Positions 6,601 through 57,578 of a stretch of DNA of 64,000 nt are shown in pieces. Where the stretch lies: NCBI GenBank assembly GCA_002269645.1, contig NIVC01001845.1, forward strand, positions 62,001 to 126,000, in the 5' to 3' direction. A program made the translations under genes and the position numbers. The notes beneath the pieces were generated by a model. The model saw only the letters and a program-made list of their open reading frames with translations, was not told the origin of the DNA and searched no databases. This stretch comes from Macrostomum lignano. Its lineage: Eukaryota. The first letter of the stretch is position 1, and each line of letters starts with the position of its first letter.

Positions 6601-7048
6601 AGACAAAGCATGGCAGCTATGTCTATAATATTTAAGTTTATAGGCATGGCTATTATCATCAATATAAAATGCATGTTCTATAGGGTTCTCTCATAAGAAA
6701 ATGGTGCTTAGTGGATATGTCAATTGCCTATGATTGCAAATAGGAAGGTTTGAATCTAAACTAAAGAGGTCAGCATTTTTTATAATTTAAATTTTTATTA
6801 CTGAATATAATTTTTTGTGTCTTGAACTTTTTGAGTTTTTTATAGACATGGCGGCCGTGTCTATAAATATGGACCTAGTTACTATTAGAGACATGGCCAC
6901 ATTGTCTATAAGTTTCTGCATTATAGACATGGCCACCATGTCTCTAAGTGTGGCATTAAAAAAAGTCCAACCACTTAAGGATTTGAACCTTGCTATACAC
7001 AATCACAAGGCAGTTGACATAGGGGCCTATCTACTAATAGTAGGCCTA

Positions 7049-7205
7049 GCGCAACCAGACATTTTTTGAGGGAGGGATTCTGGAGGATAAAGTCCCGGGA
7101 GGGGAGGCTCTGTTTTTGGCGAAAATTTGCTTGGTCTCCCCTTTGATTTTTTTGGGTCTCCGCCTAAGGGGGGGGGGCAACTGCCCCCCCCTGGTTGCGC
7201 CATTG
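7049..7205. mobile_element. Short non-autonomous element with GCGCAACCAG / CTGGTTGCGC inverted ends
   Basis: A GC-rich block with 10-bp TIRs and G/C runs interrupts an AT-rich repeat arm. The left end looks truncated. Confidence 0.5.
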
Positions 7206-10489: not shown

Positions 10490-13178
10490 ATGATGTCCTC
10501 GAATGAGCAGGCCTCGTCATCAGCGAAGGACGAGTCTGACGACAGTCTGATGGTGACCGCCTCTGAGCTGCAGATTTTTCAGGAAACTTTCCAACTGTTC
10601 GATAAAGACGGTGAGAAGATCTCTTGATGAAGCTTGACCTCGATTTGAGAAATCAATTTTCTTTACTGAAAAGCACATCGAATCCCAATGTGATCATCGG
10701 CTCAAAAGAATTTAGCTCAATTAAAAGTTGATAAGAAATGTAATTGGTTGGTAATGACTTCGCTACTCTTAATCAGAAGAAATTAGAGGCTATTAAATGT
10801 GTCAACAAGCCATTAATCCCTAATTTACCTAGGAGACGGCTGCATCACAACTGAGGAGCTGGGAACAGTTCTCCGATGCATTGGTCGATCGCCAAGCACT
10901 GAGCAATTAAAGGTAAAAGAATTCACTTTTAAGGATACTACTTAAGAAACGATACTCGTAGGTATGTAGTCCGTGATTGAATTACGAGGTGTATTCAAAA
11001 AGTTCTTTTCGGTGCCCTACAAAACTGAACACAAAACAACTGGAACTATGAAAACACTGTTAGATTGCTTAACATGATTCTGTCACTCAACATATTCACC
11101 GCCAATGTCTTTGCACTTCTGCCAGCGATTTACCAGGCCTCTGATTCCGGAACTCACACCACTCGCGTCCGTTTGGCGAACAGCTTGATTGCATGCAGCT
11201 TCGATGTGCTCGACGCTGTCAAATCGAATGCCCCGAAGGTGCTTCTTCACAGATGGAAATAAGAAGAAGTCGCACGGCGACAAATCAGGCGAATAGGGTG
11301 GATGTTGGAGCACTTCCCAGCCCCATTTGCTCAGGAGTTCCACGACGTTGTGCTTGCGATGTGCTGGCGCATTGTCGTGCAGCAGGATCACGCCAGATTC
11401 CAGCAGACCAGGGCGCTTCTTTCGTATTGCTGGGCGCAGCTTCTCCTGCATTTTTTAATTTAATTGATTACACCTGCCCACTGGGCAGATGTGCAACCGA
11501 CAGCTCAGCCGCAGCTATTGCGCGGCGCATCTGAAGGCTGCGTACGGCTGTTCAGTCCAAGGACTGGGGGGTCGCCACACACACCCTCAATTACCCCAGC
11601 TAATGCTGGTACCCATTTTACAGCTGGGTAAACTGAAGCAACGCAGAGTTAAGTGTCTTGCTCAAGGACACAAATTGTTGCAGAGGGATCGGGAATCGAA
11701 CCCCCGACCTTCAAGTCGTGAGTCCGACGCCCTAACCACTAGGCTACAACCCCTACTCCTGCAGAATCCACTTGTAGTAGTCCCCATTGACGGTGGTTTC
11801 TTGTGGGACTGCCCAGTTCAGCAGGATTCCTTGGGAATCAAAAAACATGACGTGCATGATCTTTATCGCGCCCTGCTTCCTGATGGCCTTCTGAGGTCTT
11901 GGAGAATGTGCTGGAAGCCATTCGGCAGACTGGGCCTTTGTCTCAGGATCCCAGCTGTAAACCCACGTCTCGTCTCCAGCAACAATTCTTGATAGAAAAT
12001 CCTCCCCTTCTCGATGGAACCGATGCAGGTGGCTGCTTGAAGCCACAGTTCGCTGCATCTTTTGCTCACCTGTCAGCAGGTGTGGCACCCACTTGCAGAA
12101 CTTTTTCTGTAGGAGAAGACGCTCAGTCAGAATAGTGTGGACGCTTCCTACTGACACACCAACGTCTTCTGCCAACTCTTCGCAAGTCCGTCGCCGATCA
12201 TCATCCAAGAGCTCTTGCACTTTCTTCACAACAGTCTCTTTGGTTGCAGTCATCGGCCTTCCAGAGCGGCCATTGTCCTCAACGCTCTCTCTTCCCTCAG
12301 CGAACAGCCGGTACCATTTTCGAACTGTCTGCTCAGTTGGTGCACAGTTGCCAAGCACTTGCTGAAGCTCCCTAAACATATCCGGTGGCTTTTTTCCTTG
12401 CAGAAACTGAAACTTCATCAAGCTTCGAACGTCTTGCTTTGAAAATGATTCAGCCATGGCCAAGAAATTGAGTGGCAGCTGATAGAAATGTTCGCTGCTC
12501 TAACATAGTTGCAAACTGAGACTTAAAACCCTAGGAACGTTTAGGCCATAGACATAACTTGGTAAAATCGCTAAAATTCTGTTTACAACGCTTTCTAAAA
12601 ATAAATGCCAAAGGACCGAAAAGAACTTTTTGAATAAACCTCGTATTTGGAATAGAACCACTGGTAGAAAAGTGCAGTCGTATCGAAGTCAGTCTCCAAT
12701 CATATGTAGATCCAAATTCCACACAACTCAATAGGATATGCTCCGTCGCATTGACAAGGACGGCAACGGGACTATCGAGTTCGAGGAGTTCATCCAGCTG
12801 ATGAAGTCCGACCCGAGGAAGCGCGCCGGCAAAAAGCAGCACCAGGCGGATCAGACGCACGCCGACGACTCAGAGGACGAACTGCTGGCTGCGTTCCACG
12901 TGTTTGACAAGGACCGCAACGGTTATATATCAGCGCCGGAGCTGAAGGCCGTACTAGACGGCCTCGGCCACGAGTACGAGGACGCTGAGGTGGAAGAAAT
13001 GCTCCGAGAGGTCGACATCAACGGCGACGGTTGCATCGACTATGCCGAGTTCGTCGCTATGCTCAACGCGAGCATGCCGTCTAGGGTTCCATCGAGAGTG
13101 TCGCTGGGCGGCGGAGGCGGTGACGGAGATGGAAGCGGGGCTAGCGGAAGCAAAAACGACTCGGGGGGAGCACTGTGA
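10490..13178 (+). CDS. Calmodulin-like 4-EF-hand protein, 214 aa, exons 10490-10610, 10833-10912, 12735-13178
   Basis: EF loops DKDGDGCITTEE, DKDGNGTIEFEE, DKDRNGYISAPE and DINGDGCIDYAE. Splice phases (1, then 0) are compatible with GT/AG sites. Confidence 0.9.
11083..12463 (-). pseudogene. mariner transposase split by a SINE (12463-11756 plus 11442-11083 gives 355 aa once the insert is removed)
   Basis: WVPHLL, GDETW, HDNAPAH and YSPDLSPCD motifs, with 34 residues between the 2nd and 3rd Asp. Confidence 0.92.
11451..11755 (-). mobile_element. tRNA-derived SINE with MIR/CORE(V)-like central domain
   Basis: On the minus strand: A box TAGCCTAGTGG, B box GGTTCGATTCC, core TGTGTCCTTGAGCAAGACACTTAAC...CAGTTTACCCAGCTGTAAAATGGG, and a TAAT/A-rich tail. 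TSD CTCCTGCA at 11443-11450 and 11756-11763. Confidence 0.92.
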
Positions 13179-13678: not shown

Positions 13679-16600
13679 TTACTTCTTTGCGGGAGTCTTT
13701 GCCTTTGCGTCTTTTCCCTTCGCATCTTTGCCTTTCGCGTCTTTTCCTTTAGCATCTTTGCCTTTTGCGTCCTTGCTCTTCGCGTCCTTGTCCTTTGCGT
13801 CTTTGGCTTTACCGTCTTTGCCTTTCGCGTCTTTTCCTTTCGCATCCTTGTCCTTCGCCTCTTTGCCTTTCGCATCTTTTCCCTTCGCGTCTTTTCCTTT
13901 CGCGTCCTTGTCCTTCGCATCTTTGCCCTTTGCGTCTTTGCCTTTCCCGTCCTTGTCCTTGGCGTCTTTGCCCTTCGCGTCTTTTCCCTTCGCGTCCTTG
14001 TCCTTCGCGTCCTTGGCCTCCTTGCCAGCCTTCTTGTCATTGGCCCCCTTGTCCAAAGTCTTCGCTGTCCCGGCACCAGCTCCGGACCCGCCAACTGGAG
14101 TTCTGACATCCTTGAAACTGATGGCCAACGTGATCGCCTTCTTCGCCAGGAAGCCTTTAAAGTACGGATTGACCACCGCTGTATGCTTGGCGGCCTCCGG
14201 CGGCAGGAATGTGGCGAGCTCCTTCGCTTCCAACATGCAGGCTAGCGCAACCAGGTGCATGCCGATGAGATTGAAGCTCTTGCACTCCCATTCTCCAAAC
14301 ATCAGACAGTCTACGGTGAACGAAGCCTGTTGAGCTGGCGGCAGCTGAGTGATGAAGTGCTTGTCGATGTACCAGTAGACTGTGCGCAGCAGCGGGTTGC
14401 TCTTAGAAGCGAAGGCCGCCTGTCTGGCAATGGATAGTTTGCAGTTGATTAGTTAGTACATGTCAGATTAAACCTACCAAGACCAAGAGTGCTATATGAG
14501 CCATCCTAGCCAGTCAATAGCAGAGATTGCTAAGGGTTTCTGAGGATTAAATAATTTTAAAGACAAGTCTAAATTGTTCATCGGGTGAAAGTTCCGCTGC
14601 CAACGGTGAAAAACAGTCAATGCGACCTCCGTGCTTGATATCCGAGATGATCACACCTTTACAAGAAACAAAATAAGCGATTCCTCTGTCCTCTGTTCCA
14701 GCGGAATCTTTCTAGCTACTCAAGTAAGTAGCAAGTAAAGCGTCGAGTCGCAAATACGTTCCAATGCCGATTCCAACATGAATACGCGACTGTTTTTATT
14801 GTAGTAGCTTTTGTTTAAATGATTTATTTCACGACAGCAACGCTAAAACGGCCACAAGACAGAACGGCCTCACGACAGAACGGCCTCACGACAGAACGGC
14901 CACAAGACAGAACGGCCTCACGACAGAACGGCCTCACGACAGAACGGCCACAAGACAGAACGGCCTCACGACAGAACGGCCTCACGACAGAACGGCCTCA
15001 CGACAGAACGGCCACAAGACAGAACGGCCTCACGACAGAACGGCCTCACGACAGAACGGCCACAAGACAGAACGGCCTCACGACAGAACGGCCTCACGAC
15101 AGAACGGCCACAAGACAGAACGGCCTCACGACAGAACGGCCTCACGACAGAACGGCCACCTGACAGAACTGCCACCTGACAGAACGGCCACCTGACAGAA
15201 CGGCCACCTGACGAAACGGCCATCTGACGAAACGGCCCTCACGACAAAACAGGCGTCACAACAATACTGACATGTTCTTTCTAGAAAGACACTTCTGATC
15301 AAGCAAACGCTTGTTTGACTGATGCAATATGCAATACGCTTTAATTATAATAAAAATACAACTGATGCAGAGGTAATGATAGCGAGAATCATTGCTTCGT
15401 TAGCTATTTCGAAGGGGACTTTTTAGGCACTGCCAAGGAATTCATTGCATATAGACCATTTTTATTTAGAATATTGGGCTGTTAATTCAACACAATATTT
15501 AGTGAGGGTGCAAGGGTGCTATTCACTGCGAATTTAGCATACTGGTACTTTTGTGCTAATTATTTTTTATAGTGAAGGCCAATCAAATTAACTGCATGAC
15601 GTACTGAAGCGAGACTAAAATTGAGAGCTAAGTGCAAGACTGAAGTGGAAATCGAGAGACGGGTGGGAGCAGTGGGATGTGCGAGTGTGTGTGAGGGGGA
15701 GAATTCAGGGACAATCAGCTGAGTGTTGAAAGCTCTATAAGGCTTGGGTTTATTGTTAAAGTGAGATCACGGCAGAATGACATCCGGTAATGGGAAGGCA
15801 TGAATAAGCGAGTCTAGGAGCGGCTAGAGAAGTCAGAAAAATATCTGAGAGATGTGAGAGAGGGTTAAGAGAGAGAGGTGAGAAAGATGAGAGAGGTGAG
15901 AGAGAGGTGAGAGAGGTGAGAGAGAGGTGAGAGAGAGGTGAGAGAGGTGAGAGAGAGGTGAGAGATGTGAGAGAGGGGTTAGAGAGGTGAGAGAGAGAGG
16001 TGAGAGAGATGAGAGAGGTGAGAGAGAGGTGAGAGAGAGGTGAGAGAGGTGAGAGAGAGGTGAGAGAGGTGAGAGATGTGGGAGAGAGGTGAGAGAGAGG
16101 TGAGAGATGTGAGAGAGGGGTTAGAGATGTGAGAGAGAGGTGAGAGAGGTGAGAGAGGTGAGAGAGAGATGAGAGAGGTGAGAGAGAGGTGAGAGAGAGG
16201 TGAGAGAGGTGAGAGAGAGGTGAGAGAGTGAGAGAGAGGTGAGAGAGTGAGAGAGAGGTGAGAGAGTGAGAGAGGTGAGAGAGGTGAGAGAGAGGTGAGA
16301 GAGGTGAGAGAGAGGTGAGAGAGTGAGAGAGAGGTGAGAGAGTGAGAGAGAGGTGAGAGAGGTGAGAGAGAGGTGAGAGAGTGAGAGAGGTGAGAGAGGT
16401 GAGAGAGAGGTGAGAGAGTGAGAGAGGTGAGAGAGTGAGAGAGAGGTGAGAGAGGGGTGAGAGAGAGGTGAGAGAGGTGAGAGGGAGGTGAGAGAGTGAG
16501 AGAGAGGTGAGAGGGGTGAGAGAGAGGTGAGAGAGGTGAGAGAGTGAGAGAGGTGAGAGAGTGAGAGAGGTGAGAGAGTGAGAGAGAGGTGAGAGAGTGA

Positions 16601-17981
16601 GAGAGAGATGAGAGAGGTGAGAGAGTGAGAGAGAGGTGAGAGAGAGAGAGAGGGGTGAGAGAGAGGTGAGAGAGGTGAGAGAGTGAGAGAGTGAGAGAGG
16701 TGAGAGGGGTGAGAGAGAGGTGAGAGAGGTGAGAGAGTGAGAGAGGTGAGAGAGGTGAGAGAGTGAGAGAGAGGTGAGAGAGGTGAGAGAGGTGAGAGAG
16801 GTGAGAGAGTGAGAGAGAGGTGAGAGAGGTGAGAGAGGTGAGAGAGTGAGAGAGAGGTGAGAGAGGTGAGAGAGGTGAGAGAGTGAGAGAGAGGTGAGAG
16901 AGTGAGAGAGAGGTGAGAGAGGGGTGAGAGAGGTGAGAGTGAGAGAGAGGTGAGAGAGTGAGAGAGAGGTGAGAGAGTGAGAGAGGTGAGAGAGTGAGAG
17001 AGAGGTGAGAGAGTGAGAGAGAGGTGAGAGAGGTGAGAGAGTGAGAGAGGTGAGAGAGTGAGAGAGAGGTGAGAGAGTGAGAGAGGTGAGAGAGAGAGGT
17101 GAGAGAGTGAGAGAGAGGTGAGAGAGAGAGTGAGAGAGAGGTGAGAGAGTGAGAGAGAGATGAGAGAGGTGAGAGAGTGAGAGAGAGGTGAGAGAGAGAG
17201 AGAGAGAGAGAGGTGAGAGAGTGAGAGAGAGGTGAGAGAGAGAGTGAGAGAGAGGTGAGAGAGTGAGAGAGAGATGAGAGAGGTGAGAGAGTGAGAGAGA
17301 GGTGAGAGAGTGAGAGAGAGGTGAGAGAGGTGAGAGAGGTGAGAGAGTGAGAGAGAGGTGAGAGAGAGAGAGAGAGGTGAGAGAGTGAGAGAGAGATGAG
17401 AGAGGTGAGAGAGTGAGAGAGAGGTGAGAGAGAGAGAGAGAGGTGAGAGAGTGAGAGAGAGATGAGAGAGGTGAGAGAGTGAGAGAGAGGTGAGAGAGTG
17501 AGAGAGGAGGTTTGATGTCAAGATCATGAGTGTGATCTGCAAACTGACAGACTGGGAAAATATACATGTAAGTGAGAAAGACAGCGAGAGAATGGAACAG
17601 AGTTTAGGGCGGTAAGATGCTTTAGTTGCGTCAAAAATCATAAAGAACTCATTCTCACTTGTCATTCAGTTGGCCCATTGGTTTCTCCAGCGCAGTGCAC
17701 GCATCCTTGATGAGCTGCAGCATGAGGCTGCCATCCTCAAACACGTGTATAAAGTGCTGACGAAAAATAAAGAACCCGTCCCTGTTTCCCTTGGTCACAT
17801 GCCCGTCAACTGTTGTTGCCATCGTCTCCTGCGTCAGCGGCACGCTCTTGCCGTCTATGGTGACCTGGTGCTTGTTGAAGTAGCCCAGCTTGGTGAACAG
17901 CTGGTTGTAGCACTGCCACAGGGCTGTCTCTAGCGCGTCTCTCTTAGCTAGCATCACCAAGTAAAATCCTTCCTCAGACAT
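13679..17981 (-). CDS. Unrecognised 355-aa protein with a C-terminal Lys/Asp-rich pentapeptide repeat; exons 17981-17659 and 14423-13679
   Basis: The phase-2 donor AA|gtgaga matches the acceptor ttgccag|A and joins ...GQLNDK-QAAFASKSNP.... There are 21 KDAK(G/D) units with synonymous codon variation. Confidence 0.8.
14847..15247. repeat. 16-bp minisatellite (CGGCCTCACGACAGAA / CGGCCACAAGACAGAA), intronic
   Basis: Direct read, about 25 copies. Confidence 0.95.
15846..17508. repeat. Compound GA-rich microsatellite (GAGAGAGGT)n, intronic
   Basis: Purine-rich run of about 1.7 kb. It is the source of the spurious 603-aa and 514-aa ORFs. Confidence 0.97.
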
Positions 17982-18197
17982 GACGGCCTTTCTATTGAAT
18001 TTGCCGAGTGTATCTTCTCTATGTATTTGCGTTCGTTACAATTTTATCAGATTAGGGGAAAAAATATATTAATAGCTATAGAAACTGTCTGTGGCACAGA
18101 GCCGTTTGCTTGCGAAAATTTGACTTGGATACTTTTCTCGTTGTGATAAAGCATAACTATTAAATTGTATCAAGACAAGACAGCTCATTCTAGCCCC

Positions 18198-25740: not shown

Positions 25741-26202
25741 AATCTGTTCTTTGGAATCTGCTTTTGGACGCTCAGCTCACTAAACTGACATATGTAAATA
25801 AAAAATCTGCTCGAAAACTTTACTCTTAAAAGAAATTAAACTTGCGGAAAATTTCCTATTTCTCAACAACGTATTTTTAATCAGAGCTCCGTACGACAGA
25901 CGCTTGTTGCATTGACAGCGCATTGACAGTGTCCGTGCTTCTCCTTGGGGGGGGGGGGGGGGTTCTACTTCAGTTCTTACTGACTTGGCACAGAAATAAC
26001 CCAAGCTGTTCTTCTATTTTCAGTCAGCTCATTCTCTAATTGTATTTTTTGTTTTACTGAAACATTAATGCGATAAAGTTTTTAGTTCACAGCCGTCTCT
26101 TTACTTTGTAGCGCAACACTTTCAAGAGTAACTGCGCTGGTACCGAATTATAATTTGGTCAGCTTTGACATGTTGTTCTCTCGTTGACTTCTTGGTTTTG
26201 GC

Positions 26203-27044
26203 CTATCGTCGGCGGCCCACTCTGCAATGCAATGTATGTAAAATGTGTACTAATTATTATATGATAATAGGTAGGTGAGAGAGGTGTGCTAATTATTATA
26301 TTGTATGGTAACAGGCAGGTGAGAGAGGTGTGCTAATCATTATATTGTATGATAACAGGCAGGTGAGAGAGGTGTGCTAATTATTTATTATATGATAACA
26401 GGCAGATGAAAGAGGGGTGCTAATTATTTATTATATGATAACAGGCAGGTGAGAGAGGTGTGCTAATTATTATATTGTATGATAACAGGCAGGTGAGAGA
26501 GGTGTGCTAATTATTTATTATATGATAACAGGCAGGTGAGAGAGGTGTGCTAATTATTTATTATATGATAACAAGCAGGTGAGATAGGTGTGCTAATTGG
26601 GATCACAGGCAGGCGACAAATGTGGGAGGCTCACCGGCGCCTGCTATAAACGTCAATCAGATTTCGGACGAGCCGGGCCAGTTCCTCGTCGGAGGCGCCC
26701 GGAGGCAGGTAGCCGCGCCCGATGAGCCTCGCCTTCAAAGCGTCCAAGTTGCTGCCAGTCATCCGCTTGGCAACCGGCATTCGCTGGGCTGGCTCGGCCA
26801 CGGAATTCTCTGCAGAAGCTGCGGCGGCGGCTTCAGCGGTTGCCGATTTGGCTTCAACAGCTGCCAGTTCAGCGGCTTCAGCGAAGGCCTCGGCCATAGC
26901 GGCCGCCTCCACCGCCCGGGTAGTCAAGGAATCAGTAGTGGCCGATGAAGCCTCCTTGAGCAGCAGGAAGCCGGTCGAGCTGCCGCTGAGAACAGCGAGG
27001 CAGAGCAGCAGGGTGCACAGGCGGTGGCTAGGAGTGAACGGCAT
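26203..27044 (-). CDS. Putative secreted neuropeptide precursor, 142 aa; exons 27044-26635 and 26221-26203
   Basis: Hydrophobic signal (LCTLLLCLAVLSGSSTG), Ala/Glu-rich spacer and a KR site. The donor CG|gtgagc joins the acceptor ttgcattgcag|A GTG GGC CGC CGA CGA TAG, giving ...YSRRRV-G-RRR-stop. Confidence 0.75.
26268..26600. repeat. About 44-45-bp minisatellite inside the neuropeptide intron
   Basis: GGCAGGTGAGAGAGGTGTGCTAATTATTATATTGTATGATAACA, about 7 copies. Confidence 0.92.
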
Positions 27045-27289
27045 GTCTGGATGCTGTGCGGCTGGGTCAATCCTCTCAGAATGGTGCAGTTGCCCGGTCC
27101 TGCATCCGCTTCCTTTTATTGTTTCACAGAATCCAACGTAGCCCTAATTGGTCCCGAGCTTGTTTCGCTGTAGCCTGATTGCAAATTCCTGCCAATACAA
27201 CGGAACCAATAGGAGAGCCTGGTGACCTGCTTTAGCCCTGCCAGGGTAAATGGCGAGCAGCAAATGTGAACTACTAAAAGGGAGGAGAG

Positions 27290-28110
27290 AGATTGGGGGA
27301 TAGGAGAGGGAGTGAGACAGAAGAGAGAGAGGAGAAGGAGAGGGACTGAGAGAGAGGAGAGAGAGGAGAAGGAGAGGGACTGAGAGAGAGGAGAGAGAGG
27401 GGAAGGAGAGGGACTGATAGAGAGGAGAGAGAGGGGAAGGAGAGGGACTGAGAGAGAGGAGAGAGAGGAGAAGGAGAGGGACTGAGACAGAGGAGAGAGA
27501 GGAGAAGGAGAGGGACTGAGAGAGAGGAGAGAGAGGAGAAGGAGAGGGACTGAGAGAGAGAGAGAGAGGAGAAGGAGAGGGACTGAGAGAGAGAGAGGAG
27601 AGAGAGGAGAAGGAGAGGGACTGAGACAGAGGAGAGAGAGGAGAAGGAGAGGGACTGAGAGAGAGGAGAGAGAGGAGAAGGAGAGGGACTGAGAGAGAGA
27701 GAGAGGAGAGAGAGGAGAAGGAGAGGGACTGAGAGAGAGAGAGGAGAAGGAGAGGGACTGAGAGAGAGAGAGGAGAGAGAGGAGAAGGAGAGGGACTGAG
27801 ACAGAGGAGAGAGAGGAGAAGGAGAGGGACTGAGAGAGAGGAGAGAGAGGAGAAGGAGAGGGACTGAGAGAGAGAGAGGAGAGAGAGGAGAAGGAGAGGG
27901 ACTGAGAGAGAGAGAGGAGAAGGAGAGGGACTGAGAGAGAGAGAGGAGAAGGAGAGGGACTGAGAGAGAGAGAGGAGAGAGAGGAGAAGGAGAGGGACTG
28001 AGACAGAGGAGAGAGAGGAGAAGGAGAGGGACTGAGACAGAGGAGAGAGAGGAGAAGGAGAGGGACTGAGAGAGAGAGAGGAGAAAGAGGAGAATGGTAA
28101 AGTAGACAGG
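27290..28110. repeat. GA-rich compound minisatellite (GAGAGGGACTGAGAGAGAGGAGAGAGAGGAGAAG)
   Basis: Direct read. Confidence 0.95.
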
Positions 28111-36531: not shown

Positions 36532-37075
36532 TCACTGACCGCCTCCTTCGTGGCCTATCAGGTAAGCATCGTCCAGCGAGTAGAGCGTCTTTGACCGCGT
36601 CATCGACGGCTGGTGGCAGGAGCCGTCCAAGCGTTGGTAGAGACTGGCGGCGGTCGGCAGCGGAGGCGGCATCGGTGGTGACACATCAATGCTTGCTGCA
36701 CACGGTGCAGTCTGGACCAACGGTAGCTCAGCTGATGCTCTTGCAGCCGCCTCGCCTCTGCCGTTCACCGGCGCCACCATCGCTGAGGATGACGAAGAAT
36801 TCGCTGCCGCTGTCCGATGCTTCCACAGGAGATTCTTCAACAGCAGGAGTAGCACTTCGAATAATTCGCAGAGGCCAACGACGGAGACGCCGAGGTAGAG
36901 TCCCATCAAGCCTCCAATGTCGGAGAGAAGCTGCGACAGCGGGTACTCCGGCTCTTCGTAGACAACTTCGACGCGCTCCCTTGAAGCCACCATGATGAAG
37001 TTGCTGAGCTCGAGGCGAGCTCGGCGCAGCATGGGACCTGACTCCGGAGGTATGTTGCTGTCGTTCGTGACTGAT
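36532..37075 (-). CDS. DEG/ENaC channel, last exon (TM2 and cytoplasmic tail)
   Basis: Acceptor cccccag|A (phase 2); EEPEYPLSQLLSDIGGLMGLYLGVSVVGLCELFE contains the GxS selectivity-filter motif. Confidence 0.88.
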
Positions 37076-43199: not shown

Positions 43200-44684
43200 C
43201 CGATGTCAGCCGAGCTGCGAGGGTTGGGGACGTCAGAGATATCCCAGTCTGCGAAGAGACACCTGCAGGGACCAATTCGCACCCGTTGACGGCGGCTAGT
43301 CCCGGAAGCTGCTGCCCGCAAAAGAATTGTTGTTGAGGGACTCTAAGAGCCAGGGAGCAAACGCGGTATCCAGCGCAGGAAGTCACTTCTCAGACTCAAT
43401 GGAGAGGTTGTCCGTTTGGTGTCTCCCATAGTAGCACCACGTGGAGGCCGACAGCAAGCCCCCACCCGCCTTGGTCAGCTGCGGAGGCGGGCTGTTCTGC
43501 CGCCTCTGCTGTTTTGCTGCTGCTTCTGCTGTTCCTAAAAGCGGCGCTAATCTCATTTTCGCCGGCAGATTTCCCAGGCGGAGGGAGACGACGGGAAAAG
43601 GAAAAGAGGGTGAGGGCAGAAGTAAAGGAAACAGAAAGTCACCGCGGCCTTTAAGTTTAGGTTGGTGTACTCGTATGAATGTGCTGCTGGGTGAAGCAAG
43701 ACGTCAGAATGAGCTGAGAAAGTTTCCGACCCTGTCGAAGCTGCGGAAGCATACTAAGGTACGGTATTCTGACTCGCAAATAGAAGAGAAAGTGTCAAGA
43801 TTCATTGAGAAAGAGGAGTGAGAGGCAGTGACAGGAAGGGACAATCGAACGGAAGAGGATAGGAGGAGAAGAGAGGAGAGTGGGAGAGAGGAAGAGAAGG
43901 AGAAAAGAGAGAGGGCGGAAGTAAGAGAAAGGATGGAAGAGAAGAGAGAGGGATATAGTAAGAGAGAGGGGAGAGAGAGGGGAGAGAGGGAGAGGAGAGA
44001 GGGAGAGTGAGAGGAGAGCCAGGGGCAGTCAGCATCGGTGAGACACTGGTAGTGCTCAAATCGATAATTCTACGCGGTTTCGAGTCCCCAGTTGGCCGCC
44101 CCACGGAGCGAAAATATTTAATCAGTCTCCTAACTGCTCAACTCTCTGCCCCTCGCCCCACCCTGGAGCACTTTATATGCCGGCAGGCGCGGCTTTGAAG
44201 GCGCTCCTTATTTTTCCAATCCGATTTTCCCATTTGCCAAAAGTGCCCGCCATTGCCTCGCCAAAAGCCCCCCGTGATCAGTTCTTCCCACTAGAATCCC
44301 TTCGGGGGGGGGGGGGGTCGCTCGGTGTCGGATTTCCGTCTCGGATGATCGGCGAGGGACACAAGCTCCAATATTTTAGAATACTCGAATAAGACAGACT
44401 TAGCTGCAAGATTTTAAAAAAAAGTTTGGCGAAAATTGAGCTCGAAAGTTTGCTAAGCACTCCAGCTGCCCAGGCCATTTATGTGCTCTTGCTGATTCAA
44501 ATGCAGAGTGCACAGAAGGACCTGATAGTGAAGTTCAGCATTGTCTTTTTTCCAGCCGTGACTTTCCTGCACATCCTCTTGCATTCTATGTAATTCCATT
44601 CAAACGTCCCAAACGTCCCATTCTTTGGATCCCGCTATCTTTCCAGGGCCCAGCAACAGGGGTCACAGAGCCCAGAACTCTCAC

Positions 44685-45832
44685 TCGTTGCGATAAAACG
44701 CGGCCGTCTGGTTGAGACACTGCAGATTCCTCGCCACCTCGGCTTTGCTGTAGACGCTCAGATTGAAGCACAGTACGGGCGGCAGAGAGTCCAGCTTCGG
44801 TACAATCAGGTGCGGGTTGAAGCACCTGCAGTGCTGATAGAACAGCTGCTGGGACACAACCTGGTGGCAGTAGGAATAGCTGAGATTGTACTGCCTGGCA
44901 GTCTGCATGCGGTAATCAAAGACTGAAGCAGTTTTCTCCGTGTTCCGGCAGTTATTGTTCCGCTGGAGCAGGCGGTACCGCTTCTGCACCAGGTAGGCTG
45001 TGGTGGTGACGCCCGGCGGTGTCTCGATTTGACGCCCATCCTCTGGCAGTGAGCCGGGCTGGTGAATGAACAGACGGCCGCCGAACTGATAATTGGACGA
45101 GTTGAATCTCAGGTAGGTCAAGTAGTTGCCGCGGAGGAAAAACTGCAACGAGTCGATGCTTCGATAGTTGCCCCTGCGCACGAAGTCGCCCAGCTGCAGG
45201 GTGTGACAGGCACAGCGGTAGCGCATAACGACGCTGCTGCTGTGAAAGAAGCGCATCGTGTCGACGTCCTGCAGCAGATTCCAGTTGGAGTCCATGTTAA
45301 TCTCAGTCTGAATTTGCTCTGTCTGCACTTTGTAACCAACTGTTGGCACGATGCTCTTTGGGTTTTCCGCGCCCAGAGCTACGCCGTCCATTGTTGACAG
45401 GACAATGGCTCGGACAAGAACGTTAAGAGACTCCTCGCGCAGGCTGTTCTCGAAGAAGCTATCCATGAGTGGCGCTAAGGACTGGATCTCGGGGTCCGCG
45501 GTCAGGTTGCCCACGGCGGTCTGGTACTCATCATTGGTGGTGTTGTCATCGAGCAGTACGGGAGTGTTGTCGCAGAAGGTGATGCAGGGCCAGCTAAAAG
45601 GTTCCTGGCTGGCGTAGTAGGCTGTGAGTATGGGGAATCGGCAGTACCTGTGCACCACCTGCACCAGGTTGGCGCTGAACATGGCCACGCCGGAGAATAC
45701 CAGGACTAGCCAGAACAGGCGCTCGAAACGGCTATTGCTGGAGGCCGCGTGCGAAATTCCGTGCACCGTGCTGTGCGTGAAGAGCTTCAACAGACGGGAC
45801 TTAAGCTGGGTGCGTGGACGCGGCGCTGACAT
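44685..45832 (-). CDS. DEG/ENaC (amiloride-sensitive Na channel family), first exon: HG motif, TM1 and most of the ectodomain
   Basis: STVHGISH pre-TM1 motif, TM1 LFWLVLVFSGVAMFSANLV, WPCITFCDNTP and the Cys-rich YCHQ...CRCFNP segment. The phase-2 donor GA|gtgaga follows 44685. Confidence 0.9.
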
Positions 45833-46320: not shown

Positions 46321-49300
46321 TTACAGAGCTTTGATCGGCCGGAAAACAAACTCTTTCTGTCGACAGGTGTTAAACAGCGCGCCGCTGCCCACCGTATCCG
46401 CGTCCGTCACCCCGGGCGGCAGTTCGAACCGGAAACGAGGCAGAAGGTAGCTCAGGAACAGGCAGATTTCCATGCGGGCCAGGCTCTCGCCGATGCACGA
46501 ACGACGTCCTGGAACGGCGGCAGAGGGATTCGAGGGACACGCGGCATGTTGACTTCCAGTTCCGAGTTTGTAACTGCATTTCTTGCGAAGCGTTCGAGTA
46601 ACTTATACTGGCTCATCATTTTTATTCTTTTCAGTATGGTGCATTATAGTAAATCTATTCCAATCTCTTGTGCTATCGAAACGTTAAATAAATTTTAATC
46701 ACCGTAGCTAAACGGTAAGATCTTGTCCTTATTGACCACTTGCAGCTGGCCACTGCCTTCATCGCCAACAGTCAGAAAGTGTCCGAACGGGTCGAACTGA
46801 TCTGGGTTAGCAAACACATCAGCATCTCTGGTCAGGCAGTGTGTGTTGGCCATGACCATTGTGCCCAACGGCAGCTGGTAACCACGCAGCTCTGTGTCCG
46901 ATGTGCAGCAGTGCGGCACCGCCGTCGGAACCAGGGCAGAAATTCTGCAAAACGGTTTAAATGACTTCATATCGGATTTGCCAAGCTTAGACTTCTATCT
47001 ACTCGTATCTTCTATCTATACCATCTAGCTAAATTTATCTGTGAATCAATCTATCAATTTATCAATATATCAATATGTATGTTCACAGTCTGTGAACCTA
47101 TCAAGCTATCTCTCTATCAGTCCATCATTCTGTCAGTCAGTCAATCAATCAATCCACCACTCTACTAATATGGAAATACTGTGTCTTCAGTTAAAGCTCC
47201 AAATTCGAACCTGAGCACTTCCTGGATGACGGCGTCAAGTCGCGGCAGCCGCGGCAGATCGCTAGTCGACGGCGGTCGGGCATCGCCGACAGCGCTGGCC
47301 AGCTCCTGGCGCACCGCCTCTTGCACTGGCTGGCTGCCGCTCAACAGGTTGATGGCCCACACCAGCGTCGACCGGGTGGTATCCGAGCCCGCCACCATCA
47401 GGTCGATCAGCACCTCCATCATCTGCCGGTCTGGGAAATGCGATTGCAGTGTTCGAACGATTTTAAGCTTGTGTCTGTATCAGTGGCTACTGCAAGTAGT
47501 TGGTTTTGGTACCCTTAAAACAGTGAATGCATTTTTTCAAATAATACGCTCGTCGAAATAGCTTTTTCGGCAATAAAGAACCGCCACCTAGACTAGTCCT
47601 GGTAGATATTACTAACATAATGAACTCTGACAGAAATAATCCTAACAGACTATAGTCCCGACTGATCATAGTCCTGACAGATCGTTCGGTCTAATCCTGA
47701 CAGATCATAATCCAGCCAGATCATAGCCCGGACAGACTAATCGTGATTTAGCGTGTCAGGACTATCATGACAGACCCGTCCCGTCAGACTGCACCCCGAC
47801 AGACCATCCCATATGTCGGCGTCGGGCAGGCTGCGGTGCCGCTTCTGCTCCGCAAGATAGGCGTAGAGAAAATCGGTCAGGCCATCCTCGTCAAGTTCGT
47901 CCAGGTCGGCCTGGTGCTCGGCCACGATGGGCTCCAGTAGGTCCCGGATGCCATCCCGGGCGGCTTTAAGCTTCCCCACGCCCAGCCAATCGGCCAGAGG
48001 GTCCAGCAAGCTCGTCGTGTTCAACAGCAGGACGCCTCCAGGCGCCGAGTTCAACTCGTGCAGGGCGGAAACCATCCGGCGCAGCTCGGCGGAGTTGTAC
48101 TCGAACCTGCGGCCATAGACTATGCGCCCGATGACATTCGCGATCGCCTGCGAAAGACGGCCGTCGATGCGAATTGGCCGGGCGGAGCCATTGGCCCGGA
48201 TTGAGTCGGCAAGTCTGCCTGCTTCCTCGATGATGGCGCCTTCGAAGTTGATCCGGCCGAAGCCAAAGTCGCGCAGCACGCGCAGGCAATAGCGGCGCTG
48301 CTCTCGGTGGCGGACACCCTCAGCGGAGGCGATGCCTGACGGAGAAATCGGGTGGTTTGCTGCTACGTTGGCGGAAGTTGGATAGTGACCGGGCTGCTTC
48401 AATATGTTGGTGGGTTGGTGTCTGAGGATCAAGGCGGGTTCGATGCTTGAAGTCTGAGTTGGCTTGGCGTCAAAGGTTCGGTGTTAATTGGTGTCGTAGG
48501 ATCGGTGTGGTTTGGTGTCGTAGGATCGGCGTAGTTAGTGTTGTAGGATCAGTGTTGTTTGGTGTCTAAGGATCGGGAGCGTTTGGTGTCGAAGGATCGG
48601 TGTGATTTGGTTACGTAGGATCGGTGTTGTTTGGTGTCTGAAGATTCAGGAGGATTGATGCTTGAGGATCGGTGTGGTTTGGTATCTAAGGATCAGGATC
48701 AGGTTTGGTGTCTAAGGATCGGTGTGGTTTGGTGTCTAAGGATTGGGGTGGGTTGAAGTGGTAGCATTGCCACTTAGTGTCTAAGATCGAAATGGATAGG
48801 TATTTTAAGGATCGAGGTGCAGATGGTTTATTCTTCTGTGATATGACACGAACCTTTTCCATCGGACAGAAACTTGGTGAATGCGCGCAGACCCCTGCCA
48901 GCGATGTGCTCGTTTCTGGCAAATGCCTCCTTGATAGCCTCCACTGAGTTTAGCACCACAATGTAGAAGAATCCGACTCGAACTGTAAAAATATCTCCGT
49001 ATTGCTTCGCGAGCTCGGTGAAGTAGTGATCGCGGCGTTCTGTAATGTTTTTTAAGTCATTCACCTTGTTAAGGTACGTGTAATTTTATCTGGTTCGTCC
49101 TCGAATGAAGCCCGACGGAGCCCGGCAGTCATGTGCTTGGCATTCAAACTAAATCCCCCGACTTGAGATTAACCCTGTCAAACTTGTAAACTTGACAATT
49201 CGAATACCTATACATTTATGCAATTGATGATTTCTGGCGCATGGAACTACACTTGCTCCTTATCTCTTTTAAACTGATTCTTCCAGAGATAGTTTGCTAC

Positions 49301-49899: not shown

Positions 49900-51773
49900 C
49901 AGGGACAACTAAAACCCTCGGGACGCAAAACGAGCCAATTCATGGCAAAAAATCTGAGGGGCTCGCTTAAAAGTATTGTTCTATGGCTTTTTCAAGTCTT
50001 CTCTGCTATCAGGCAAATTAAAATTGCTTTAGCTGCGGCCAGCAGTGAAGCTAAGCTGAACTATATCAAGTGAATCATTTTTTATTCACTTGATGAAATG
50101 CCAAGAAAGTGCAGCGTATTTCCGTGCTCGTCAAATTACAACTCTGAAGCCGTTCGAACACGGACATTTGCGTTTCCCAGAGATCCACAGGAGCGAGAGC
50201 GATGGAGAAAGGCGCTGCCAAATATTCTCCAGGTAAGAAACCAGATCATTTGCTGTCATTACTGCTGCATAATTCCGCTTCAATTCTGCATGCCAGTCTC
50301 GTCCAAACAACTTGAAACCCAAAATTTATTATTTTAGAGAGTGACTGACAATATGGGCGTGTGCGTAAAGCATTGGCCAAGCGATGCTCCAATAGTCAAG
50401 AAAAACTCTACCGAAAGGCCAATTAATCCTCCTTCTGTTTTTAATGGAGTTCCTAGCTCGTGTTTTGTAAAGAACCAAGGTACGTAACCTAAAGATTGCT
50501 CAACACTTAGCGTCTATATCGATTTTGCCGCTCACAATTATCTTACTTTTATTTTTACTCTTATTTTAGACCAGGACCGACAGGCCGAAAAGCGCGGTGT
50601 TCTTTCTGATGCGAGGTGCAGCGACATCGATGAGATGGACGCTTTTGAGCTGCTTGATTTTTTGCCGGCATGGGAAAGTTTTCGAGCTGAGGTGAAAAAT
50701 TCGGATGTCGTATCTCGACATGCACTGAACACAGCTATTCTGAACGAAGACGTTTACTTGTTTACGTTAGATAAAGATGGAGACCTCTCTGTTCGAATTT
50801 TTGTCTCACCCAACTTTCTGATTCGTGCATTCAAACTGCATACACCGATTTCGGTTCGAGACTTGTTGGCATTTCAACCGACACTCAAGCGCTGGTCGCA
50901 ACTGGATGCTGTTGTCGTGCAGTGCAAAAATTCCGACGCCAATCCCCAACGTGAAGTCGAAGCGTTTGTTAGTAGAATCAGTGATGATATAGATTCTGAC
51001 TCTGATTTGGATCCGTCGCTTCAGTTTTTGATTCGACAACTTAGCCTTACATTAGTAAATCGGAACAATCGCCGCTATGACATTTCACTAGTGCGACAGT
51101 CAGCATTGCTCTACTTGATCAGTAGTTCGGCTTACTCTTACCTACGGAAGCTATTGCCATTGCCTCATCCCCGAACGCTGCAGCTGCAACTAGCAGGTAC
51201 AGGAGAAGTTGGCACAGAAACCGACGCAGCCGGTGTGATCCAGTCAGTTTTTGCTAGTCTATCAGGAGCTCAGCGAAACTGCGTAATTATGTTTGACGAA
51301 ATGTACATACAACCGTCCGTTCGATATCGATGCCGTCACCTTCTGGGTCGAGCCGTCGACGATCCGGACCAGGTTCCTTTATGTACGAGCTACTGACTGT
51401 TTGTGTCGTCTTGTCCTTGGAGTTCCGTATTTGCTTCTATCTTCTTGCCGTTGGAGTTTCATCTTCGCTTTCATCCTTTATCTTCTTGCCGTTGGAGTTA
51501 TATCTTTGCTTTCATCTTTTATCTTCTTGCCGTTGGAGTTTTTTTGTTGATATGGCGGTTACTTTATTGTAAATACATTGTAATTATATCACTGGTTCCT
51601 ATTCTTTAAATTAAATACTCGACATTGCCTCGCTTTACTATTTAATCTAACCGTTAATGCCTGATAGCAGAGAAGACTTGAAAAAGCCATAGAACAATAC
51701 TTTTAAGCGAGCCCCTCAGATTTTTTGCCATGAATTGGCTCGTTTCGCATCCCGAGGGTTTTAGTTGTCCCTG
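49900..51773 (+). mobile_element. P-superfamily (THAP/Galileo-like) DNA transposon, internally deleted
   Basis: 116-bp TIRs (49900-50015 and 51658-51773, 2 mismatches seen) and an 8-bp TSD GTTTAGGT (49892-49899 and 51774-51781). Confidence 0.93.
50098..51396 (+). CDS. THAP-domain P-element transposase, C-terminally truncated (367 aa); exons 50098-50232, 50338-50479, 50570-51396
   Basis: THAP C2CH: MPRKCSVFPC...FAFP...RERW...CVKHW...PSVF. Downstream it has SSSAYSYLRKLLPLPHPRTL and CVIMFDEM (first catalytic Asp). Splice sites are canonical and in frame. Confidence 0.85.
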
Positions 51774-56537: not shown

Positions 56538-57578
56538 TCAGACGGTCTGGCCCGGATGGGTCCGCATGTGCCGGCGCAGGTGCGACGAGTCGGAGAAGGC
56601 CTTGCCGCACACTGGGCACATAAAATTCTTGGCCGCCGGCGGCCGATGCGTGGCCGGCGCGCCGCCCGGCGTGTGGGCGTGCAGGATATGCCGGCGCAGG
56701 TGGTCGGACCTGGCGTAGGCCTTGTCGCAATAACTGCAGCGATGGTCCTTGGTGCCGCTGTGGATCTTGATATGGGTGGTGAGGCTGTAGGACCGGCTGA
56801 AGGCCTTGTGGCAGGTCGGGCAGGTGTACGGCTTGGCGTCGCTGTGAATGACGGCGTGCCGCCGCAGCCTGTAGCTGGAGCCGAAGGCTTTGCCGCAGTG
56901 TTCGCAGGGAAATGCGCCAGCTGAAGCGGCCGCCTCCGCCGTGTGCGTCGCCATGTGCCGCTTGAGCTTAGCCGCGTCAGCCACAATCTTGCCGCAGGTG
57001 GTGCAGGGCAAGCCTCCGGCTGGCTGAGCCTGTTGCTGCTGCAGCTGCTGCTGGGGCATCGGAACAGCCACGACAGCACCGCCGGGCTCAGTCTTGACCC
57101 ACTGCTGCGGCTGCTGATGCTGCTGATGATGGGCCGCCTGCTGCTGCGGCACACCAGGCTGCTGAGCTTCCACCTTCTGCTGGGGCAGTAGCTGAGCAGT
57201 CGGTATGATGAAGGAATGCGGCAAAGCTTGCAGCTTCACGTGCTGGCCAGCCTGGCCAAAAAAATCGCGCGACCCAGCTGTCAGAGGCATCTGGCCACTC
57301 AGCACTTGGCCAGGCAGGACTTGGCCAGATAGCATCTGGCTTGGAAGCATCTGGCCAGATAGAATTTGGCCAGATAGTACTTGGCCAGACAGGACTTGGC
57401 CAGGCTTGACCTCAATTGCCTGAGCATAGCCGCCAGAGGTTGTTGTCACTTGAATTGGTTGGCCATCTTTGCGGAGAAAGTCGGCAGGAGCACTAGTAAT
57501 GATAGTATGAGCTGGCAGCAGTGACACGCCATCAGCTGTGATCAGCTGCATGGTGAATGGCTGCTGGAATGACGCCAT
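56538..57578 (-). CDS. C2H2 zinc-finger transcription factor, 346 aa, 5 fingers, Gln-rich N-terminus
   Basis: CTTC..RHMATH, CEHC..RHAVIH, CPTC..THIKIH, CSYC..RHILHAH and CPVC..RHMRTH, with linkers HSDAKPY and HSGTKDH. Confidence 0.9.
   Translation of the reverse strand: MASFQQPFTMQLITADGVSLLPAHTIITSAPADFLRKDGQPIQVTTTSGGYAQAIEVKPGQVLSGQVLSGQILSGQMLPSQMLSGQVLPGQVLSGQMPLTAGSRDFFGQAGQHVKLQALPHSFIIPTAQLLPQQKVEAQQPGVPQQQAAHHQQHQQPQQWVKTEPGGAVVAVPMPQQQLQQQQAQPAGGLPCTTCGKIVADAAKLKRHMATHTAEAAASAGAFPCEHCGKAFGSSYRLRRHAVIHSDAKPYTCPTCHKAFSRSYSLTTHIKIHSGTKDHRCSYCDKAYARSDHLRRHILHAHTPGGAPATHRPPAAKNFMCPVCGKAFSDSSHLRRHMRTHPGQTV

Follow-up and report, generated by a model that had tools for sequence, protein, structure and literature searches.

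A 64,000-nucleotide stretch of the Macrostomum lignano genome (GenBank assembly GCA_002269645.1, contig NIVC01001845.1, positions 62,001 to 126,000 of the forward strand; hereafter the window) carries on its minus strand a two-exon gene for a protein of 142 residues. Judged by the anatomy of the precursor, the gene very probably encodes an amidated prohormone whose predicted product is a single 44-residue peptide ending in Arg-Arg-Arg-Val-amide (RRRV-amide). The balance tips slightly toward a strongly diverged gene of the flatworm NPY/NPF superfamily, an assignment that draws mainly on an intron at the hallmark position of NPY/NPF genes and on the precedent of the planarian gene Smed-npy-11, and marginally on sequence similarity. 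The gene model itself was already annotated in GenBank.

The ATG at 27044 opens an open reading frame (ORF) of 137 residues (27044..26634), which is followed by a TGA at 26633..26631. This stop codon sits within the splice donor CG/GTGAGC (the slash marks the exon border). Joining 26635^26221 excises a 413-nt intron (26634..26222) that runs from GTGAGC to TTGCAG, and the second exon, A GTG GGC CGC CGA CGA TAG (26221..26203), completes an in-frame coding sequence of 429 nt. The product has the C-terminal end DVYSRRRVGRRR (...SRRRV-G-RRR). About 40 AG dinucleotides lie 3' of the donor, and the acceptor at 26221 alone gives an end of the form X-Gly-basic-basic-basic-stop. The only coding intron is in phase 2 and splits the codon of Arg137 between its second and third bases. 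The reading frame, the stop codon inside the donor, the acceptor, the junction coordinates and the translation had all been set out in an earlier note on this DNA, and each proved exact, base by base.

All close protein matches were from M. lignano. The 142-residue protein with this splice is found in three GenBank gene models of the Mlig_3_7 assembly (GCA_002269645.1), where it is labelled 'hypothetical protein'. Two of the models (PAA58391.1 and PAA63417.1, of BOX15_Mlig014097g2 and g3; P0029 in our set) are 100% identical to the spliced product of the window, while the third (PAA70726.1, of BOX15_Mlig014097g1; P0001) is 99% identical and differs at two spacer residues. The Mlig_3_7 annotation was made from RNA sequencing (RNA-seq) data, using StringTie/TACO assemblies and a mapped de novo transcriptome with TransDecoder ORFs (PMC5730564). 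Because the gene models come from this RNA-seq-derived annotation, the junction is regarded as transcript-supported, at the level of the annotation rather than of individual reads. The second exon, which the earlier note had called hidden, is annotated but unnamed: three M. lignano loci already carry models of the exact spliced product. Older UniProt models based on the ML2 assembly (P0002-P0004, P0030, P0031 and P0033) share the donor and are joined either to unrelated downstream sequence or to the upstream neighbour. These alternative models look like prediction artefacts.

The DNA of the g1 locus (L001) was aligned to the window as a second genomic copy. The promoter region, exon 1, exon 2 and the 3' untranslated region (UTR) are about 99% identical between the two, and the possible core promoter, both splice sites and exon 2 are identical. 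The 43-bp minisatellite in the intron has 8 units in the window versus 10 in L001 (about 6650..7080), and such variation in repeat number between copies fits the expectation for non-coding sequence. Exon 1 shows six differences, two of them non-synonymous (A32D and A57V) and both of these within the spacer. The mature-peptide region carries one synonymous change, and its protein sequence is invariant across the M. lignano copies retrieved. At about 99% identity, the divergence of the copies is too low to demonstrate selection.

The prohormone layout proposed in the earlier note was borne out on the spliced product, which reads as a signal-peptide-like N-terminus, an Ala/Glu-rich spacer, a Lys-Arg site, the 44-mer and Gly-Arg-Arg-Arg. 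Residues 1-25 start basic, contain a hydrophobic core LCTLLLCLAVL (residues 9-19) whose hydropathy peaks at 12-17, and offer small residues at -1 and -3 of the candidate cleavage sites between residues 20 and 25; some 25 N-terminal residues would serve as the signal peptide. Prohormone convertase would cleave C-terminal to Lys93-Arg94, carboxypeptidase would trim the three C-terminal arginines, and peptidylglycine alpha-amidating monooxygenase would turn Val138-Gly139 into Val-amide. The mature candidate, MTGS...RRRV, comprises the 44 residues after K93-R94 with a net charge of +3, and is followed by Gly-Arg-Arg-Arg-stop. The resulting product would be MTGSNLDALKARLIGRGYLPPGASDEELARLVRNLIDVYSRRRV-NH2, with [M+H]+ 4910.70.

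An internal monobasic cut at Gly109-Arg110, giving MTGSNLDALKARLI-amide and a 28-mer, was also considered. By the rules of prohormone processing, monobasic cleavage is favoured by a basic residue at P4, P6 or P8. This alternative was ranked below the 44-mer because no basic residue is present at any of these positions and because the 44-mer is predicted to form one hairpin.

AlphaFold2 modelled the 48-mer as a hairpin with a helix at 5-16, the loop GYLPPGAS at 17-24 and a second helix at 25-47 (mean predicted local distance difference test score, pLDDT, 88.9). The second helix is amphipathic, with a hydrophobic moment of 0.66 (p=0.003 versus shuffles). The model of the whole precursor was of low confidence (pLDDT 53.5) and was drawn on for secondary structure only. 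As modelled, the peptide would fold as a helix-loop-helix hairpin in which the amphipathic second helix runs into a basic tail, RRRV-amide, that would contact the receptor as the RxRF/Y-amide does in NPY/NPF. Foldseek comparison of the 48-mer model with the PDB gave no match, the query being too small for the search to be informative, and phmmer against the PDB returned chance helix-loop-helix matches only (Cas12b/C2c1, E=0.24; Vps1).

The case for NPY/NPF ancestry begins with the intron. An intron between the second and third nucleotides of the Arg codon just before the amidated residue is a hallmark of NPY/NPF genes (PMC7314547, PMC2953531), and it is present in 10 of the 11 planarian npy genes (Collins et al., PMC2953531). 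The M. lignano gene has the same arrangement: CG/gtgagc...ttgcag/A at 26635/26221, phase 2 in Arg137, then Val-Gly-RRR. Both position and phase equal the published hallmark, as the first description of the sequence had recognized. By our own estimate, one random intron would match the hallmark slot by chance about once in 400 times (426 position/phase slots, 142 codons x 3). As in NPY/NPF, a Gly amide donor and a basic site directly follow the terminal residue (Gly139-Arg-Arg-Arg-stop, in exon 2), and there is one KR-flanked peptide copy per secretory precursor, the signal-peptide-like N-terminus being judged heuristically. The aromatic C-terminal Arg-x-Arg-Phe/Tyr-amide is missing. The peptide ends in Arg-Arg-Arg-Val, in which the R-x-R spacing is kept and the terminal residue is aliphatic.

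The sole precedent found for a non-aromatic NPY end is the RPRL of Smed-npy-11 ('atypical neuropeptide Y' of Schmidtea mediterranea, BK007021; PMC2953531). Smed-npy-11 likewise encodes a single long peptide with an end of the form S-R-x-R-[aliphatic]-Gly-basic that lacks an aromatic residue, and it shares the intron that splits the Arg codon next to the terminal residue, as well as the acidic S-D-E motif that opens the helix. Its peptide is also a prediction only, as it is not listed among the peptides detected by mass spectrometry. Smed-npy-11 differs in keeping RPR, in its Leu end (...SRPRL-amide), in a helix three residues longer and in retaining the Tyr and Phe positions. Moreover, its peptide directly follows the signal peptide and has a C-terminal extension behind it, and Pfam Hormone_3 recognises it. 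The earlier note had listed the Val end as a departure from NPY; Smed-npy-11, which ends in RPRL-amide behind the same intron, shows that a non-aromatic amidated end is already known.

Canonical flatworm NPF/NPY genes (Smed-npy-1 to -10; Arthurdendyus NPF, P0019) share with the M. lignano gene the phase-2 Arg-codon intron, the amidation signal, one peptide per precursor and an amphipathic helix that contains S[PD]EEL.x[YL]L..L as its core. They end in GRPRF/Y-amide, whereas the end here is RRRV-amide, and they have a proline-rich arm where the M. lignano peptide has an alpha-helical one. The M. lignano gene also differs in a 3-residue deletion, in its 67-residue Ala/Glu spacer and in having no Pfam match. 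The layout of Smed-npy-10 is the same as that of the M. lignano gene (signal peptide, propeptide, KR, peptide, GKR, stop), and the Smed-npy-7 precursor, too, ends at the peptide. Compared with the pancreatic-polypeptide fold (PP-fold), an amphipathic C-terminal helix and a hairpin are predicted, but the N-terminal arm is alpha-helical, prolines are confined to the YLPPG loop, the helix is 3 residues shorter, and the length is 44 residues as against about 36-40 in the family.

A MAFFT alignment with 10 planarian NPYs gave 21-36% identity, with R, R and G invariant. It placed a single 3-residue gap in the helix, in agreement with the earlier observation that the helix is three residues shorter than in NPY. 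The core ASDEELARLVRNL lines up with the NPF core S[PD]EEL[KR]xYLxxL. End-anchored alignment to 14 NPY/NPF peptides was better than for shuffled sequences at p=0.002, and at p=0.014 with the RRRV tail held fixed. If the gene descends from an NPY gene, the phase-2 intron and the Arg-x-Arg-X-Gly-basic end would have been kept, while the aromatic terminal residue (as in npy-11), the Pro of RPR and three helix residues would have been lost. The alpha-helical N-terminal arm would stand in place of the NPY polyproline arm.

Several results weigh against NPY/NPF membership. Custom NPY/NPF profiles scored just 2.2-3.5 bits, values equalled or beaten by 1-2.4% of shuffles. Neither the precursor nor the 48-mer was matched by Pfam Hormone_3 (PF00159) at E<=10, and in precomputed results this model matches most planarian NPYs, npy-11 included. 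BLASTP against Smed-NPY-11 gave no alignment. When the last 60 residues were run through HMMER exhaustively against 1.84 billion representative proteins, no NPY-family protein was returned; the strongest similarities outside M. lignano were to LEM-domain and peptidoglycan-binding repeats, which share a generic helix-loop-helix pattern. No orthologue outside M. lignano was found by word-indexed search, profile search or the HMMER scan, a negative that is weak because genomes and transcriptomes of other Macrostomum species are not visibly represented. In addition, the NPY-like reading was suggested by the very C-terminal features that were used in testing it, and a convertase might also cut at the internal RRR. 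A profile search built from planarian NPYs and the M. lignano peptide found planarian and other invertebrate NPFs and no M. lignano protein, a weak absence among 314 candidates.

Among NPF-like ORFs on short public contigs (P0026, P0027, P0023, P0024 and P0028), ...AGRPRF is followed by VS... or by junk and not by G-K-R. F-V-S is what translation across a GTAAGT donor would give if that donor followed the Phe codon directly; at the level of protein sequence, this hints that in some taxa the NPY/NPF intron may lie one codon 3' of its canonical site.

In the best-surviving alternative, the gene encodes a secreted amidated precursor of neurons or glands that is confined to this lineage and unrelated to NPY/NPF, its intron and Arg-rich end being coincidental or convergent. 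Such a gene would account for the lack of a significant match of the peptide to any NPY/NPF model and for the lack of an orthologue outside M. lignano in these searches, and prohormone features by themselves do not require NPY ancestry. It would leave to coincidence an intron at exactly the diagnostic NPY/NPF position and phase. The planarian precedent for an aliphatic end and an NPY/NPF similarity that is weak but consistent, and in the correct register, also speak against it. This explanation is an appreciable possibility, although an unlikely one.

The locus could also produce a transcript that yields no bioactive peptide, for example from a young or decaying gene, or a precursor cut at the internal RRR to give a non-amidated 40-mer. 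The gene is restricted to M. lignano in the databases searched, the tribasic site does precede Val138, and the copies are too similar (about 99%) to reveal purifying selection. Nevertheless, all annotated copies have an intact frame, intact splice sites and an invariant peptide region. Planarian mass spectrometry found GAEFF[IL]RRVV-amide intact and amidated (PMC2953531, supplements), so RR-V can escape cleavage and Val-amide ends exist in flatworms; the objection that the internal RRR would be cut is weakened accordingly. Loss of the amidated peptide by either route is considered improbable. The planarian RRVV-amides (Smed-npp-18 and spp-10) share the Arg-Arg and Val-amide end with the M. lignano peptide, but each of their precursors holds two or three copies of a 10-mer that starts with GAEFF, ends in RRVV and has no long helix. 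The single M. lignano 44-mer, without GAEFF and ending in RRRV, does not belong among them.

A third alternative is that a small non-hormonal protein carries, in its C-terminal 44 residues, a helix-extension-helix domain of LEM/SAP type, KR and G-RRR being incidental. It has the automatic UniProt names on its side, 'LEM domain-containing' for A0A267FAC1 and A0A267E9Y1 and 'SAP domain-containing' for A0A1I8FB30. The HMMER scan, which returned the M. lignano copies and four multi-repeat proteins (P0035, P0036, P0032 and P0034), matched the protein P0035, with five LEM domains, at E=1.7e-5. BLASTP against P0035 gave 44% identity over 27 residues, a profile of its LEM repeats scored 19 bits, a value reached by 0 of 5000 shuffles, and the AlphaFold2 model of the peptide is itself helix-loop-helix. 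The likeness consists of the pattern L..RLI.RGY.PP (....L..L) and the helix spacing, together with the predicted two-helix hairpin. P0035, however, was chosen post hoc from the 1.84 billion proteins, with a score inflated by its several repeats. Unrelated PG_binding_1 repeats, nine of which occur in the bacterial protein P0036, were matched by this query too, so the L..RLI.RGY.PP motif is considered generic; a generic helix-loop-helix pattern explains the automatic LEM/SAP names. Pfam LEM (PF03020) and SAP (PF02037) gave no match at E<=10, and the LEM signature GP[IV]T..TR..Y.KKL, with its loop, is missing. A signal-peptide-like N-terminus would put the domain in the secretory lumen and not in the nucleoplasm, and together with the processing sites it fits a hormone precursor. 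The UniProt labels for one locus also disagree with each other (LEM, SAP, SnoaL-like and RxLR effector candidate), the 'SnoaL-like' name stemming from a model fused to a downstream ORF. Finally, a LEM/SAP domain leaves unexplained a dedicated 19-nt exon that encodes only V-G-RRR-stop. This alternative is very improbable.

The two remaining proteins from the scan, P0032 and P0034, are long repeat proteins on JGI metagenome contigs with a unit of about 60 residues containing ...TPRTAAKELEKLA.KYLPPGASEEE.... They have YLPPGAS[DE]EE in common with the flatworm peptide, and no Pfam family accounts for their repeats. This likeness is probably convergence.

The earlier note had further proposed a hybrid of NPY/F and CRF/DH44 traits. 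Amidated helical peptides of about 40-44 residues are typical of the CRF/urocortin/DH44/ELH type, and some members end in Val- or Ile-amide, so the length of 44 residues and the Val-amide end do fit; LDALKARLI of the peptide compares with LDVLRQRLL of Drosophila DH44. The precursor does have a predicted amidated peptide of roughly that size close to its C-terminus, but this trait is unspecific, as Smed-npy-10 and Smed-npy-7 are built alike. The layout counted as CRF-like, with the pro-region first and the peptide last, is that of planarian NPY genes such as Smed-npy-10. Pfam CRF (PF00473) gave no match, and neither the PDB scan nor the scan of 1.84 billion proteins contained a CRF-family member. 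A CRF/urocortin/sauvagine/urotensin I/DH44/DH41/ELH profile scored -0.6 bits, which 1290 of 5000 shuffles equalled or exceeded (p=0.26). This profile result counts as a lead only. We know of no description of the hallmark intron position for CRF-family genes. With a sequence relationship undetectable and a gene structure of NPY type, a CRF/DH44/ELH-type peptide, or an NPY/CRF hybrid, is barely credible. Nor is the gene a new class of signalling molecule.

Coordinates of the gene and its parts are collected in Table 1.

Table 1. Features of the M. lignano peptide gene, in window coordinates, listed in the direction of transcription.
Feature	Coordinates	Strand	Basis or remark
Possible core promoter: CCAAT (27151..27147) and TATA-like AATAAAAGG (27120..27112)	27112..27151	-	About 70-105 nt 5' of ATG; pattern match only
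Coding part of exon 1 (410 nt), from Met1 through the CG of codon 137 (Arg)	26635..27044	-	ORF list; same as GenBank models P0029 and P0001
Signal-peptide-like N-terminus, residues 1-25, MPFTPSHRLCTLLLCLAVLSGSSTG (next residue F)	26970..27044	-	Hydropathy and small residues (heuristic)
Acidic Ala/Glu-rich spacer, residues 26-92 (67 residues; 25 Ala, 9 Glu, net charge -6)	26769..26969	-	Composition
Lys93-Arg94, putative dibasic prohormone-convertase site	26763..26768	-	Read from sequence
Exon-1 part of predicted mature peptide, Met95 to Arg137	26635..26762	-	Invariant in copies; AlphaFold2
Intron, 413 nt, GT..AG, phase 2	26222..26634	-	Read from sequence
43-bp tandem repeat, 8 copies, occupying most of the intron	26254..26598	.	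Tandem Repeats Finder
Exon 2 coding part: Arg137 completed, Val138, Gly139 (amide donor), Arg140-142, TAG	26203..26221	-	Identical in L001 and GenBank models
Probable 3' UTR; polyadenylation-like hexamers AGTAAA at 26105 and 26058, AATACA at 26046	26040..26202	-	Pattern search, which does not fix the true end

Plus-strand ORFs overlapping exon 1 (26622..26948 and 26722..27141) were set aside as by-products of GCN-rich Ala codons without annotation support. A bacterial promoter/terminator scan is irrelevant to a eukaryotic gene, and its matches were the intron repeats only. From about 260 nt 5' of the ATG, a 34-bp CT/GA-rich satellite of about 23 copies occupies 27302..28080 and yields long spurious Ser/Leu/Pro ORFs; similar arrays are found at 15756..17665.

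Two exons of a DEG/ENaC (Pfam ASC) channel gene, 44681..45832 (-) and 36532..37032 (-), share the strand of the peptide gene and lie 10-18 kb upstream of it; in the UniProt model P0033, the last exon of the channel gene is joined to the peptide gene. Some invertebrate DEG/ENaC channels are peptide-gated. About 8 kb downstream, the ORF 17661..18017 (-) corresponds to the C-terminal 119 residues of UniProt A0A1I8IZN7 ('SnoaL-like domain-containing'). Some ML2-based models splice exon 1 of the peptide gene to this ORF through the same donor; such models are chimeric predictions or else reflect an alternative transcript. Other neighbours, unrelated to the peptide gene, are a cytochrome P450 exon at 47737..48432 (-) and a C2H2 zinc-finger ORF of 346 residues at 56538..57578 (-). 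Transposon remnants are present at 11753..12463 (-), a mariner/Mos1-type transposase fragment (HTH_48, Transposase_1), and at 50635..51396 (+), a P-element/THAP9-like fragment.

The searchable literature names neither the peptide, nor an RRRV-amide, nor the gene identifier; the surveys of McVeigh 2009 and Koziol 2016 fall outside that search and may hold a prior description. With that scope, the suggestion of an undescribed or highly diverged family remains a fair one. As a flatworm model, M. lignano is early-branching and transgenic-ready, and very little of its neuropeptide set has been described; three loci that now carry the name 'hypothetical protein' (in UniProt, 'LEM/SAP domain') can be renamed as prohormone.

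There is a small chance that the gene represents a previously unrecognised flatworm hormone type, an NPY-type gene that only its intron and its R-x-R-X-amide end still betray, and in which the polyproline arm was swapped for an alpha-helix and the end was switched to RRRV-amide. If so, the hormone would be a hairpin resembling a helix-extension-helix, with a receptor specificity unlike that of any deorphanised NPY/NPF receptor. As no canonical M. lignano NPF surfaced in the searches, the peptide could even be the sole NPY-superfamily ligand of this animal. As a divergent member of the NPY/NPF superfamily, it would be the second independent case, after npy-11, of an NPY-type ligand that has lost the aromatic amide on which Y-receptor binding is believed to depend. 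Two questions would then become testable: how NPY-type ligands and their receptors diverge, and to what extent the hallmark intron can be trusted in assigning neuropeptide orthology when little sequence similarity is left.

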